The notes beneath the pieces are model-generated. The model saw nothing but the letters and a program-made list of their open reading frames with translations. It ran no database searches and was not told the DNA's origin. A program made the position numbers and the translations under genes. 64,000 bases of DNA, taken from the sequence record MW349129.1. One strand, 5' to 3'. Of this stretch, positions 3,205 to 37,340 are shown piece after piece. Positions within the stretch are counted from its first letter, which is position 1, and each line of letters starts with the position of its first letter.

Positions 3205-5079
3205 ATGGGTAGATTTATTAAATCAACATATTTAAATAAAAAAGAGACACAATCAGGTAAAGAAAAAGTAGTAATGGTAGTTAAAGAAGAAGACGGTACT
3301 AAGAAACATATGGAAATAACTGATCCAATGATGCATTATTATGTAACTAAAGATGAACATTGGTTACCACCTAATAAAATTGTAGGTTCTATTGAAAAAG
3401 ATAAAGTAAGAACTGTTACTTGTAAGCATAAAGATATTATTAAATCAGTGGTTAAAGAAGCCGGTAATGCTCAAGATAAAGCAGAATATGACAGAATTAT
3501 GAAATCAGGTAATTGGCAAGAATATAGAAAATTAAGAGATTTTCATTTATTAAATAACGCTCATGGTTCTGATATTAATATAGAAGATTATAATATTAAT
3601 GAATATATTAAAAAGAATTTAGATAGTAAAGTCGGTATAGATATATGTCTATTCGATATTGAGGTTGATGGTTCTCAAGTAACAGGCTTCCCAGATCCTG
3701 AAAAAGCTGAGGCAGAGATAAATATTATAACTGTAGTGGATTGGAGTAAGAAAAAAGTATTAACATTTGCTCTTAAATATGACACTGATACTTATAAAGA
3801 AACTATGAAAGACCAAGATAAGTTAATTAAAGACTTAAATGAAATTTATAATAATGAAAATAGTGAAATTGGTAAAGATTTAGGTTTAGAATTTGAAATA
3901 TATGAATTAGATACAGAAATGCAAGTAATTAAATCTTTCTTGTATTATATTAATGAAATTAGTAAACCTGATATATGTACGGCATGGAATTGATAATAGG
4001 TTCCATTAAAAGAATATTAATTGCTGGAACGTTCTTTTTAGAATAATCAGCATCAACAAAATAAAAGTTGTTCAACGACTAAATATATTCACTCATATTA
4101 ATGAGTATGATATAGTCTATTTTATATTTAATAAATATAAAAGCTAGATTATGACTTTCCTGCAATATTTGAACGTATTAGAGTTAATGGAGAAGATCCT
4201 GCAGATTATTTCTGTTCTAAAGAATTTGAAGATAAAAAAGCATATTATAAACTAGATAAAAATGCTACTGATATGGCTAATAGATCTTCTACATTTGAGA
4301 CTAATTCTTATACTAACTGGATTGACCAATTAGCGTTATATGCAAATATTAATAAACCTAATGGAGCTTTAGAGTCAGTTAAGTTAAATGATATTGGAGA
4401 AAAAGAAGCGGGAGTCACTAAAGATGTTTATGAAGGTTCTATCTCTGATTTACATTTTAGAGACTATTATACATTCATTCTTTATAATATTAAAGATACT
4501 GTATTAACTGCATTAATCGAACATAACACTAATATGTTTGATCTATTATTCTCTATTGTAGATATGACTAGAACAAGACCTAGCAAAGCACTTAAGAAAA
4601 CTATTTGTTTAAGAAATCGTAGTTCAGTATTCTTTGAAAATCAAGGATATGTAATAAGTAATAATCATTCAAAATTATTATCAGATCCTAATGCAGATAA
4701 AATTCGTGGTGGTTTTGTAGCAGATATGATGTTAATTGAACGTAATGGAGATACATTAGTTAAAGGTAAAGATATTAGATCTAATAGATTATTTAGTAAT
4801 GTTTGCGACTTTGACTTGACTGCTCTATATCCATCTATTATTAGAGCATATAATATAACACCTGAAGGACATGTAGGTAAGATGAATATTCTTGATAAAG
4901 ATAGAATAACAGTACCTAAATATGAAGAAGATAAAGATAACTATGATTTTAATACTGAATTCGTAAGTAAGTTTAACAGTCAAGATAATGTTGCTTTTGC
5001 TCAAGAATTTCATGGTTTGCCTTCTCTTATTGAAGCATCTGACGATATTATTAAAGAATTAGAGGAGGAAATTAGTTAA
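3205..5079 (+). CDS. family B DNA polymerase, N-terminal part (3'-5' exonuclease plus motif A); spliced join(3205..3990,4144..5079), 573 aa
   Basis: ExoI FDIEVD. ExoII is restored across the intron as AWN|LDYDFP. ExoIII YNIKD and polymerase motif A DFDLTALYPSII are present. Motifs B and C are absent, so the polymerase is split. Confidence 0.88.
3991..4143 (+). ncRNA. minimal group I intron (153 nt, no ORF) in the DNA polymerase gene
   Basis: P1: exon ATGGAAT pairs with intron GTTCCAT, with U-G at the splice site. Core elements AATTGCTGGAA, AATCAGCA, GTTCAACGACTA and GATATAGTC; P7 GACTA/TAGTC; terminal G at 4143. Removal is in frame. Confidence 0.92.
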
Positions 5080-30844: not shown

Positions 30845-33800
30845 TTAAAGCATATCTTTAACTTTACGTTTTAATTCTATTAGAGCTTTATTAGTGAAAA
30901 GCATCAAGTAAATATCTGTAGTCATACGAGATACGATACTTAATGGAGAGAATATAGCTTCGATTTCTTCTTCAGGTCTATATTCAGCATAAGGAGATTC
31001 ATCAGGCGGAGTAACGTCAGCAATAACTGTTTTACATGCTCCGTAGAAACTAATCTTATCACCGATACTCATATCATCTTCATACTCTGTGAAGATTTCA
31101 ATAAGAACTCCGTCTACTTTTTCACCTTTAATTTTCTCACTATTAATTTTCTCTACAGCTGGAATATCTACATCTAATCCAGGTAATGTAGATTTATTAT
31201 CTTTAACTGCATTTTTGTATTCTTTATATTTGCTCTTAGATTTATTAATATACCCATTAACCAATTTAGCTAATGTAGGAGACATATTTTCAATATCATC
31301 ATTATAGTAGATATTTACTTTTTTAATTTCTCCAGTATATTTAGATCTAACAGCTCTATTAGAAATATCTTGTATTTCTTGTTCAAATTCAGAACCGATT
31401 TTATCTAATAAAGAACCAATACCTTCATCATCAAATGAATTCTCAAATATCATTAATGGATCTCCTGTACGTACATTTTGACCTTCTTTAACAATATATT
31501 GAATATTCGTACTAGAAGCTAAGTTGACTGTTTTCTTCATAGTAACTTTAGTTGACATAGATTCAGACATACTGCTAGAAATAATAGAACTATCTTCGTA
31601 CGTGCCATAGCTTGAAGCAACTGCAACTTTAGATAATTTACCAGCAGCAAATTGAATATCATTATTACTACCAGATCCTGCAAAGTAATTATCATTTTTA
31701 GCCAATACTTGTCCTTTATTAAATTTCTTACCTACTTCAAATTGTGGAGTAAGTTTATTATTTTGATAGAAACCACCATTAGAGTTCTTAGCAAGTTTTT
31801 CAGATATATCGATCACATCGTTATCTCCATTAATGTATTCAACAAGCATTAATCCTGTTTTCTCATTAACAGAAGTTACTTTCCCATCTTCTTTAGCTTT
31901 AAATGCAAAAGTATCTGAAATTTGATACGCTAAAGCTTTATCTACACCAGATCCAACTAATGGACGGTCATTTGTTTTAGTAGCGATTAAATGCTTAGCC
32001 TGAGTTCCTGTCATTCCTATACGAGGTGACATTTTTATTATTCTACATTAATTTAATATAGATTAGACTATATCTTTACCATATAAATGGTAACTATTAT
32101 TTAGTCGTTGAACAGTCTTTAACTGATGCTGATTAACTTAATAAAGCTTTCCAGCAATTAAATAATTTTATTGCGAACTTACCTCATTTCGTATATCCGC
32201 ATGTCTACTAGTATATGGATTTAATAATTCTAATGGAGTATATAAAGCTGTATCACTTACATCTTTTTTACTACCATCAGTATAACCACGAGTAGATTTA
32301 ATTTGTGTATCATATGAAAGTTGTCTAACTATCCCTACCTTATTAGAGTCGGGAGTGGATATTCCTAATATACCTTGCATACTTTCATCGTAAGAACGAA
32401 TATCAGGTTCATATGATTGTTCCGAGTTACGTCCAGCAGGACCTTTAAATGTAACAGAAGTCATCTTATCTATTTCTAAGTTAGGGTTTAAATCAGATAC
32501 TTCATCTACTGTAGGTTGTTCCATAATAGTTTTAATTAATTGGTCTTGTTTAACTGAAATATTCTTAGGATTTTTATTATTATAAGAATCTGAATATTCT
32601 TTATAAGCATTAGCCATCATTTTATATAATAATGCGTTGATCTGTTCTGGACCACGTACACGATAAATTCCCATATCATTATGATCTTTAGCAGATACAT
32701 CTTCCAACATCGTATTAGCTAATAGTAATAATTCAACCATATTATCAGGAAGTTTTAAATCTCTTAATACTTCTTTAGTAATAGGATCCATTGCTAAATC
32801 CATAGTATTTTTAATACCTTTACCAACATTACGACTGTAGAATTTATCATTGAAATATTCTAAGTAAGGTGTTTCAGTTTCAAAATCACTGAAGTTGTAT
32901 TGTGATGTAGGTAATACAGTTAATCCAGACATTAATAAATCAAATCTTAATTTATCAGTAGAATATATTAAATAACCATCTTGGAATTTAATCTTATTCT
33001 TTTTATCATGAATACTAATTCTTTCATTCTCAGTAGTAAATTTATAATCAACTTCATAAAGATCAAGAATATTAGTTAAACCTTTATAGAAACCTAATAA
33101 TAGAATTGTAGGTACTAATTTATTAGTAATTTTAACACGTGAAAATGCCATAGTTTTACTAGCTTGTATATTCTTACTAAATTTCTTATCAACGACTCCA
33201 AAGTCAACTTCATTGTCTAATTTATCAATAATATAGTCAAATATATTCATTTCCATTGACTTAATATTAGATTTACTACATTCATACATAACAGATTCTG
33301 TTTTATCTGCTAATATTAATTTAGATTTATTAATATTATAACCAATAGGGAAGTATTTATCTTGATCATAATCAATCTTAGATAAGCTCGCACTATCAGA
33401 AATCATTCCTAATAAACTTCTTTGGTTAAATATAAGTACATTAGTATCATCTTGGAAATTTAGTATATTTCTAGATAAACTATTATAAATAACTGATGTT
33501 ACATATTTATTATTGATTAAAGAAGCATTACCCTTTTTAACAGATAATTTAGATTTATTTTCAATATAATCTATAACTTGATCATCTTCAATAACTTTCT
33601 TAATCCATTCAGTTTCAGCATTTTCTTTATAACCGAATTTTTCTATAATGAATTTATTATAGTTAGTTGTAATCCAAACAGTGTCAGGTTTATATTTAAC
33701 GATTGGCCACATCATTAACTGTTTAGTTAATACTTTTTTACCACCATTAAGTTTCATGTATTTACCATCAATAACTTTAGGAACATCAAATTTAACATTA

Positions 33801-37268: not shown

Positions 37269-37340
37269 TGTCCCATAACTCAATGGTAGAGTGAGCGGTT
37301 GTTAACCGATTTGTTGAGAGTTCAAATCTCTCTGGGACAA
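37269..37340 (+). tRNA. trnN: tRNA-Asn(GTT)
   Basis: Acceptor TGTCCCA/TGGGACA, D stem ACTC/GAGT with GG, anticodon loop TT-GTT-AA, T arm GAGAG-TTCAAAT-CTCTC. One anticodon-stem mismatch, discriminator A, no encoded CCA. Confidence 0.8.

Follow-up and report, generated by a model that had tools for sequence, protein, structure and literature searches.

The DNA polymerase gene of Staphylococcus phage Madawaska is interrupted by a 153-bp insert which, with a probability that we put at roughly 0.88, is a miniature intron of group I that leaves the polymerase pre-mRNA through the standard two-step pathway of its class. The insert is found at positions 3991–4143 of the window, the stretch of 64,000 nucleotides analysed here, which agrees with record MW349129.1 at 100% identity (window position = record position − 124000), and is one of a number of related copies in the same genome. 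The coordinates of all features are collected in Table 1.

The boundaries of the insert are defined by an uninterrupted polymerase allele of 573 codons in phage MarsHill. In an alignment of the Madawaska, MarsHill and LY01 genes, the insertion appears as a single gap of precisely 153 bp with its 5′ edge at ...TGGAAT (3990) and its 3′ edge at CTAGAT... (4144), and no other placement of the gap fits. This comparison with intron-less alleles had been proposed in an earlier note on the same DNA, which described a 153-nt ORF-less group I intron at this place, and every structural element that the note listed is found where it had put it. The S6 and UFV_DC4 genomes gave a query coverage of 92%, the same figure as MarsHill, and the genes neighbouring the polymerase are kept in the intron-less relatives. 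LY01, an independent deposit, carries the same insert with 97.4% identity; the four differences from the Madawaska copy are all at unpaired bases, of which the P6 loop has three and the P5–P4 joiner one.

The reading frame on either side agrees with these boundaries. The open reading frame at 3205–3993 ends in ...CTAWN, followed by the in-frame codons TGA TAA TAG (3991–3999), while downstream the frame opens at 4144, reading LDYDFPAIFERI..., and removal of 3991–4143 yields the MarsHill reading frame with AWN joined in frame to LDYDFP. The PHROG 3011 profile ('DNA polymerase') matches exon 1 at its positions 26–250 and exon 2 at 252–567, and since the exon ends fall at positions 250 and 252 the two exons are contiguous; a Pfam search of the exon pieces returned no match. 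The intact MarsHill protein aligns with the family B polymerases of RB69 and T4 (E about 4e-11), and the alignment shows ExoI (FDIEV), ExoIII (YNIKD) and polymerase motif A. Its segment ICTAWNLD-YDFPAIFERI stands opposite ILTGWNVESFDIPYVYNRI, which we take to be the ExoII motif, and because the alignment places the junction there, the intron splits ExoII between Asn and Tyr-Asp. The proposal that excision mends a divided ExoII in frame is borne out both by the intact allele and by the contiguous profile positions. The remainder of the polymerase is encoded by a separate gene about 20 kb away, also with a mini-intron. The existence of the intron is already annotated in GenBank, where both exons are joined under the remark 'exon junction predicted based on alignment', the alignment being with an AR9 protein. 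This join escaped the earlier note, as did the membership of the intron in a multi-copy family.

Table 1. Features of the interrupted polymerase gene, its intron and the second mini-intron of the window
Feature	Position in window	Strand	Basis
Exon 1, DNA polymerase exonuclease-domain gene CPT_Madawaska_137, 262 codons	3205–3990	+	ORF translation, PHROG 3011, GenBank joined CDS
P1 5′ strand AUGGAAU, final seven bases of exon 1, with U3990 at the splice site	3984–3990	+	pairs with 4000–4006; minimum-free-energy fold; intron-less allele
Putative group I mini-intron, 153 nt, ORF-less	3991–4143	+	MarsHill allele, RF00028, family models
P1 loop, three in-frame stops UGA UAA UAG	3991–3999	+	read from sequence
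Internal guide sequence, P1 3′ strand GUUCCAU; G4000 pairs with U3990	4000–4006	+	complementarity, minimum-free-energy fold
P1–P3 joiner, five bases, no P2	4007–4011	+	coordinates
P3, long-range	4012–4017 / 4085–4090	+	covariation
P4, encloses the P5 hairpin	4022–4027 / 4047–4052	+	RNAalifold, covariation
P5	4031–4035 / 4040–4044	+	covariation
P6 hairpin, 9-base loop	4054–4057 / 4067–4070	+	RNAalifold, covariation
J6/7 and P7 5′ strand (GACUA, 4077–4081), inside conserved TCAACGACTAAAT	4071–4084	+	Rfam consensus, RNAalifold
P7, crosses P3 (pseudoknot)	4077–4081 / 4113–4117	+	RNAalifold, PB50 variant
P8 hairpin, 6 bp, AUUA loop	4091–4096 / 4101–4106	+	covariation
J8/7 and P7 3′ strand (UAGUC, 4113–4117), inside conserved GATATAGTC	4107–4117	+	Rfam consensus
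P9 hairpin, 10 bp, AAU loop	4120–4129 / 4133–4142	+	covariation, minimum-free-energy fold
Terminal G (omega G), last intron base	4143	+	intron-less allele
Exon 2, rest of ExoII, ExoIII (YNIKD), polymerase motif A (DFDL..LYPS); starts LDYDFPAIFERI	4144–5079	+	translation, PHROG 3011, RB69/T4 alignment
Second copy, 165-nt mini-intron in virion RNA polymerase beta subunit (C-terminal), CPT_Madawaska_160	32030–32194	−	models, S6/DC4 alleles, joined CDS

The insert has the architecture of a group I core, with helices P3 to P9 arranged in the P4–P6 and P3–P9 domains and with the P3/P7 pseudoknot. The U·G pair at the 5′ splice site (U3990 and G4000) and the terminal G4143, both claimed before, are present. 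The minimum free energy of −37.5 kcal/mol compares with −23.6 ± 3.2 for shuffled sequences (z = −4.3), and the corresponding fold recovers P1, P3, P4, P5, P8 and P9. The conserved core is accompanied by little else: P2 is missing, as the note had reported along with the lack of peripheral domains and of an endonuclease, no P5abc is present in the 153-nt intron, and the 153 bases hold no ORF and contain stop codons in the exon frame. P3′ (4085–4090) directly abuts P8 (4091–4096), leaving neither P7.1 nor P7.2, which help define the IA1 and IA2 subgroups; these elements and P2 would be expected in an intron of either subgroup. Likewise, the intron-encoded homing endonuclease that marks a mobile intron is absent from the 153 bases and their ORF list. 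The G+C content is 21%, the 153-nt intron showed neither GNRA tetraloops nor any other evident tertiary anchor, and for these reasons the unaided folding of such a tiny core may be marginal. A P10 of 3 bp is possibly formed by UAG (3997–3999) with CUA (4144–4146), as their complementarity suggests.

Covariation among relatives supports this structure. A covariance model, R1, was built from the Madawaska and LY01 introns and their own structure with P7 left unpaired, and it matches exactly two places in the window, 3991–4143 and 32030–32194; the intron-derived model gave 61 matches at E ≤ 1e-3 in 100 loci. The R1 score of the polymerase intron itself is 158 bits and its R2 score 121 bits, both models having been trained partly on this intron. 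In the alignment of relatives (42 distinct), 94.4% of the cells are paired and compensatory changes occur in 33 of the 37 modelled pairs, and the covariation score reaches 0.648, where shuffles give 0.16 and slid controls no more than 0.12; fitting the alignment to the model structure does inflate the pair counts, although the effect is nonetheless large. Compensatory changes affect all six pairs of P3 (UA, AU, CG and GC types, 94% of cells paired), all five of P5, all four of P6 (100% paired), all ten of P9 and all six of P8, a helix that is absent in some relatives, and P4 is 100% paired with compensatory changes across relatives. For P7, a compensatory variant GACUG/CAGUC is present in the PB50 relative, which was found via protein alignment and not by the P7 pattern. 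The TCAACGACTAAAT segment, which holds J6/7 and the 5′ strand of P7, is invariant in 11 Staphylococcus-phage paralogs. With an independent MAFFT alignment of 11 paralogs as input, unconstrained RNAalifold prediction retrieved no helices other than P4, P6 and P7, since MAFFT misaligns the variable hairpins; the covariance model was therefore built and the sequences realigned with it.

Agreement with the known group I introns is detectable, although the intron falls below the usual threshold of recognition. The Rfam group I model RF00028 matches it end to end (model positions 1–253) with 23.3 bits and E = 0.0012 in an 800-base search, the Infernal check proposed in the earlier note, and this score lies under the gathering cut-off of 50 bits. 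The shortfall can be attributed to the missing P2, the short hairpins and the misaligned P1. Rfam scans of the whole window, at the gathering threshold and at E ≤ 1, missed the intron and returned only a tRNA and noise, and the standard threshold misses both mini-introns of the window. At the level of sequence, the single-stranded segments and P7 strands in TCAACGACTAAAT (J6/7–P7) and GATATAGTC (J8/7–P7′) agree with the Rfam group I consensus. Taken with the compensatory changes in P3, P4, P5, P6, P8 and P9 and in P7 of PB50, and with guide sequences that track their exons at four boundary-verified introns, this upholds the group I core that had been proposed.

The intron is a member of a family that is dispersed over the Madawaska genome. 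A refined model finds 12 mini-introns of at least 85 bits in eight essential genes, the next match having 25 bits, and each of the 12 falls in a gene whose annotators either had to join it or failed to reconstruct it. Most are in core replication, transcription and packaging genes: two each in the large terminase, beta-N of the virion RNA polymerase, the non-virion RNA polymerase beta-C and the prohead protease/scaffold, and one each in the exonuclease part of the polymerase, its catalytic part, the virion RNA polymerase beta-C and gyrase B. The second copy of the window, in virion RNA polymerase beta-C, scores 86 and 103 bits with the family models. Its boundaries (32194..32030) were predicted from P1 (GCGGAU/GUUCGC) and the terminal G, and S6 and DC4 then proved to lack exactly these 165 bp, with the junction ...RHAD–SPRIGMTG in both alleles. 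The members with verified boundaries accordingly measure 142 nt (PB50 polymerase), 142 nt (LY01 polymerase intron 1), 153 nt (Madawaska polymerase) and 165 nt (Madawaska virion RNA polymerase beta-C). All four introns bounded by intron-less alleles have the P1 U·G pair and the terminal G, and the guide of each matches its own exon. Exact lengths are given for these four only, because the inference of splice sites from P1 and an open frame was ambiguous when applied to the 12 copies.

Beyond Madawaska, BLAST with the 153 bases found multiple places in every Staphylococcus jumbo phage in the match table, with 13 in Madawaska, 34 in LY01, 28 each in Machias and AH12, 19 in PB50 and nine in MarsHill. 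A short P4-P5-P6-P7 pattern occurs at no fewer than 118 loci of IMG/VR; among the matches listed these are mostly on contigs of 200–400 kb and often in tandem, about 150–210 bases apart. In 185,579 cellular species genomes a single contig, belonging to a metagenome-assembled genome, carried the same pattern. The only cultured phages that BLAST connects with the metagenomic copies are the Staphylococcus jumbo phages. For one metagenomic locus with seven mini-introns (L080), tblastn with Madawaska ORFs and Pfam identified no host gene, and the locus contains an HNH/NUMOD3 endonuclease ORF. A phage-specific multi-copy family of this kind appears to populate the Staphylococcus jumbo phages and many uncultivated phages of 200–400 kb.

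The polymerase genes of the sister phages suggest how such an element may have arisen. The 153-nt, ORF-less intron of Madawaska and LY01 follows ...TGGAAT (Asn262), and six bases upstream of this site, after ACGGCT, PB50 has an ORF-less intron of 142 nt; at the PB50 site and with a nearly identical guide sequence, Machias carries an intron of about 1.09 kb with a homing endonuclease gene. A further site lies after codon 162, where intron 1 of LY01 is 142 nt long and has no recognisable P8, and where PALS_2, Machias and PB50 have HNH-bearing introns; in Machias and PB50 the HNH ORF occupies the usual place of P8. Where the 153-nt intron has P3′ abutting P8 and just five bases from P1 to P3, the full-size introns that Machias and PALS_2 have at related sites do contain additional sequence. 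In light of these relatives the mini-introns look like streamlined derivatives, or precursors, of endonuclease introns, and the 153-nt intron most likely arose by reduction of full-size endonuclease introns at neighbouring or identical sites in sister phages. The mini-introns are scattered unevenly over phages whose exons are more than 95% identical, which points to recent gain or loss.

Excision at the RNA level and its chemistry, which we infer from the sequence, would follow the group I scheme. Exon bases 3984–3990 would pair with the guide at 4000–4006 to form P1, and an external guanosine bound at P7 would attack after U3990. G4143 would next occupy the guanosine site and the exons would be ligated, possibly aligned by the 3-bp P10, which would restore the ExoII sequence ...AWN-LDYDFP.... 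The three in-frame stops at the 5′ end of the intron would release ribosomes before the catalytic core.

The 153-nt intron is probably autocatalytic on its own, although we favour this by a small measure. A less probable but still substantial alternative is a group I-derived intron that has lost its autonomy and whose splicing in vivo depends on a phage or host cofactor acting in trans, for example a phage-encoded maturase-like protein or an RNA chaperone, which would stand in for the absent peripheral domains, as some mitochondrial group I introns need maturases or CYT-18. All elements of the catalytic core are kept under clear structural selection, which argues against such dependence, even though this AU-rich core is cut down to the extreme, P2 and any evident tetraloop/receptor pairs being absent, and some relatives are without even P8. 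With 12 similar copies in the Madawaska genome a shared cofactor would be economical, and the several homing endonucleases encoded in the Madawaska genome also speak for dependence on a cofactor; on the other hand, no candidate cofactor was identified in this analysis. Moreover, activity without protein is known both for engineered sunY derivatives of about 180 nt and for the 205-nt Azoarcus intron.

Comparison with known systems sets the Madawaska intron apart mainly by its size. To our knowledge, the 205-nt Azoarcus intron is the smallest natural self-splicing group I intron. It is GC-rich and relies on tetraloop-receptor contacts. One paper calls it a 'compact 205 nt intron' and gives 37 °C as a temperature of self-splicing (PMC13168695). 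The Madawaska intron is likewise a compact, ORF-less group I intron of bacterial type that has few peripheral domains, a U·G pair within P1 and helices P3 to P9 and that ends in a G, but at 153 nt (142–165 in relatives) it is about a quarter below the Azoarcus length, lacks P2 and has 21% G+C. Furthermore, it is found in a protein-coding phage gene and not in a tRNA anticodon loop and, unlike the Azoarcus intron, it belongs to a multi-copy family. With the phage introns of IA2 type (T4 td, nrdB and nrdD, those in the SPO1 and Bastille DNA polymerases, and those of Twort and phage K) it shares the insertion at conserved motifs in virulent phages' genes for DNA metabolism, the J6/7–P7 and J8/7–P7′ sequences, the patchy occurrence among close relatives and the existence of sister phages with endonuclease-bearing versions at the same or adjacent sites, whereas it is several-fold shorter and has no endonuclease ORF, P2 or P7.1/P7.2. 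Doudna and Szostak reportedly found in 1989 that engineered sunY (nrdD) mini-ribozymes of about 180 nt stay active when the ORF and peripheral elements are stripped; those were laboratory deletions assayed in trans, while the Madawaska intron is natural, evolutionarily maintained, smaller and predicted to splice in cis. Degenerate 'group I-like' introns of 56–81 nt in fungal rRNA genes have been proposed as the natural minima of group I introns (PMC3160393). These, however, keep only P1, P7 and P10 (PMC3160393), in contrast to the complete covarying P3–P9 core of the Madawaska intron. The mini-introns, of 142–165 nt and in some cases without P8, might be the smallest natural self-splicing group I ribozymes, forming a phage-specific multi-copy family in essential genes, a proposal that we regard as possible, if somewhat doubtful.

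Readings without splicing fare considerably worse. It is very improbable that the insert is kept in the RNA and that two polypeptides, one ending at 3990 and the other starting at the ATG present at 4273, assemble after translation. Large enzymes are indeed split in these phages, as the RNA polymerase subunits and the distribution of the family B polymerase over two genes demonstrate, but a start at 4273 loses 43 conserved codons, including the Tyr-Asp of ExoII, the reading frame is open right from 4144, and the annotation gives the second polymerase piece neither a start nor a ribosome-binding site of its own. The insertion is also base-precise against the uninterrupted alleles and carries a covarying ribozyme core, neither of which favours two polypeptides. 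As an intact ExoII seems to be needed if the exonuclease domain is to work and the second piece is without a start codon or ribosome-binding site, splicing is by far the likelier course. Still harder to credit is a dispersed, non-catalytic MITE-like repeat of superficial group I likeness, with the gene inactive or rescued by some other recoding: multiple short, AT-rich copies under the Rfam threshold would fit it, but all 12 strong Madawaska copies are in joined or split genes, every boundary-checked copy has a guide sequence that matches its own exon, the long-range helix and the P3/P7 pseudoknot covary as in group I introns, and the conserved single-stranded segments fit the Rfam group I consensus. 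An intein is ruled out by the in-frame stops and by the nature of the element as an RNA structure, and an assembly artefact by the same intron in the independently deposited LY01 genome; translational bypassing was set aside, as the ribozyme core accounts for the insert.

The preprint text of the Madawaska genome paper lists intron-disrupted genes, and within that text neither 'group I' nor 'self-splicing' occurs and the size of the introns is passed over; what the earlier note says of short introns in related phages is matched there as to the introns, but not as to their shortness or class. A later paper on jumbo phage DC4 states that Rfam identified no introns (PMC10638138). In the literature accessible to this analysis, no description of small or miniature group I introns in phages was found. 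The unusually small group I identity and the large phage-specific family appear to be undescribed in the literature examined.

A dedicated model of the family would mend gene annotation in many jumbo-phage genomes; in MarsHill, for instance, the reconstruction of the terminase gene failed for its annotators. The Staphylococcus jumbo phages are reported, in the preprint text of the Madawaska genome paper, not to propagate at 37 °C, and we offer as speculation that AU-rich minimal cores are thermolabile and that the splicing of a dozen introns in essential genes could contribute to this failure. If unaided splicing is true, the minimum for natural group I introns would move from 205 to 142–165 nt, a quarter to a third lower, and P2, the peripheral domains and, in some members, P8 would be shown to be dispensable, which would bear on ribozyme folding, on arguments about minimal ribozymes and possibly on compact permuted-intron designs for circular RNA. 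If, instead, a cofactor is needed, a phage-encoded general splicing factor serving a dozen introns would be new for bacterial viruses.

The genome of Staphylococcus phage Madawaska carries multiple mini-introns of the same family as the one in the polymerase gene. Besides a second intron in the window, the refined covariance model identifies ten more family members in the rest of the genome, with scores of 86-109 bits, which brings the total to 12 mini-introns in eight genes. The family B DNA polymerase itself is encoded by two genes located about 20 kb apart, of which one encodes the exonuclease domain and motif A and the other the "catalytic subunit", and each of the two contains one mini-intron. 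In the terminase gene, the pair of mini-introns directly follows a homing endonuclease gene. The only Rfam match above a gathering threshold in the whole window is a tRNA gene.

Features of the mini-intron family and associated genes
Feature	Locus	Coordinates	Strand	Remark
Second mini-intron, 165 nt	window	32030-32194	minus	within virion RNA polymerase beta (C-terminal) gene
tRNA gene	window	37269-37340	+	RF00005, 62 bits
DNA polymerase gene	window	3205-5079
DNA polymerase gene	record	104735-106855
Madawaska members	L132	635-772, 1085-1210, 8046-8181, 8219-8355		outside window
Madawaska member	L133	6009-6144		outside window
Madawaska member	L134	37456-37578		outside window
Madawaska members	L135	1726-1848, 1907-2029, 15750-15890, 16564-16698		outside window
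Three tandem mini-introns	L126	1361-1869		MarsHill terminase large subunit region
Seven mini-intron matches	L080	856-4206		IMG/VR contig 3300029384_000001, 359 kb
LY01 polymerase intron 1	L003	4485-4626		no recognisable P8 hairpin
Machias virion RNA polymerase beta-N intron 1	L128	1505-1632		no recognisable P8 hairpin
Mini-intron core	L005 (Machias), L006 (PB50)	3502-3616		directly upstream of HNH ORF
HNH endonuclease ORF	L005, L006	3620-4204
Cellular pattern match	L136	998-1073		CANQDA010000006.1

The three codons immediately 3′ of the 165-nt intron read TCA CCT CGT in Madawaska versus AGT CCG AGA in the intron-less S6 allele, all three changes being synonymous. The ACCU within the recoded codons can pair with the AGGU of the P1 loop, forming a possible P10; alternatively, the recoded stretch may represent a co-conversion or endonuclease-immunity tract.

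The introns also occur in arrays. The mature MarsHill terminase escaped the annotators' reconstruction, probably because its three tandem mini-introns are separated by very short exons. On the 359-kb IMG/VR contig, seven matches lie inside 3.4 kb, some of them no more than about 70-125 bases from the next, which would make this an extremely intron-dense gene of an uncultivated jumbo phage. Among 185,579 cellular species genomes, the mini-intron pattern is matched only once, in a Lachnospiraceae metagenome-assembled genome, and the contig in question may be of phage or prophage origin and binned with that genome.

Finally, the P8 region varies within the family. The HNH endonuclease ORF in Machias and PB50 takes the position of P8 behind a mini-intron core, an arrangement that links the ORF-less and ORF-bearing forms. 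In the LY01 polymerase intron 1 and the Machias beta-N intron 1, only about eight bases extend from P3′ to J8/7-P7′, and if these introns still splice, their P8-less group I core would be unusual.
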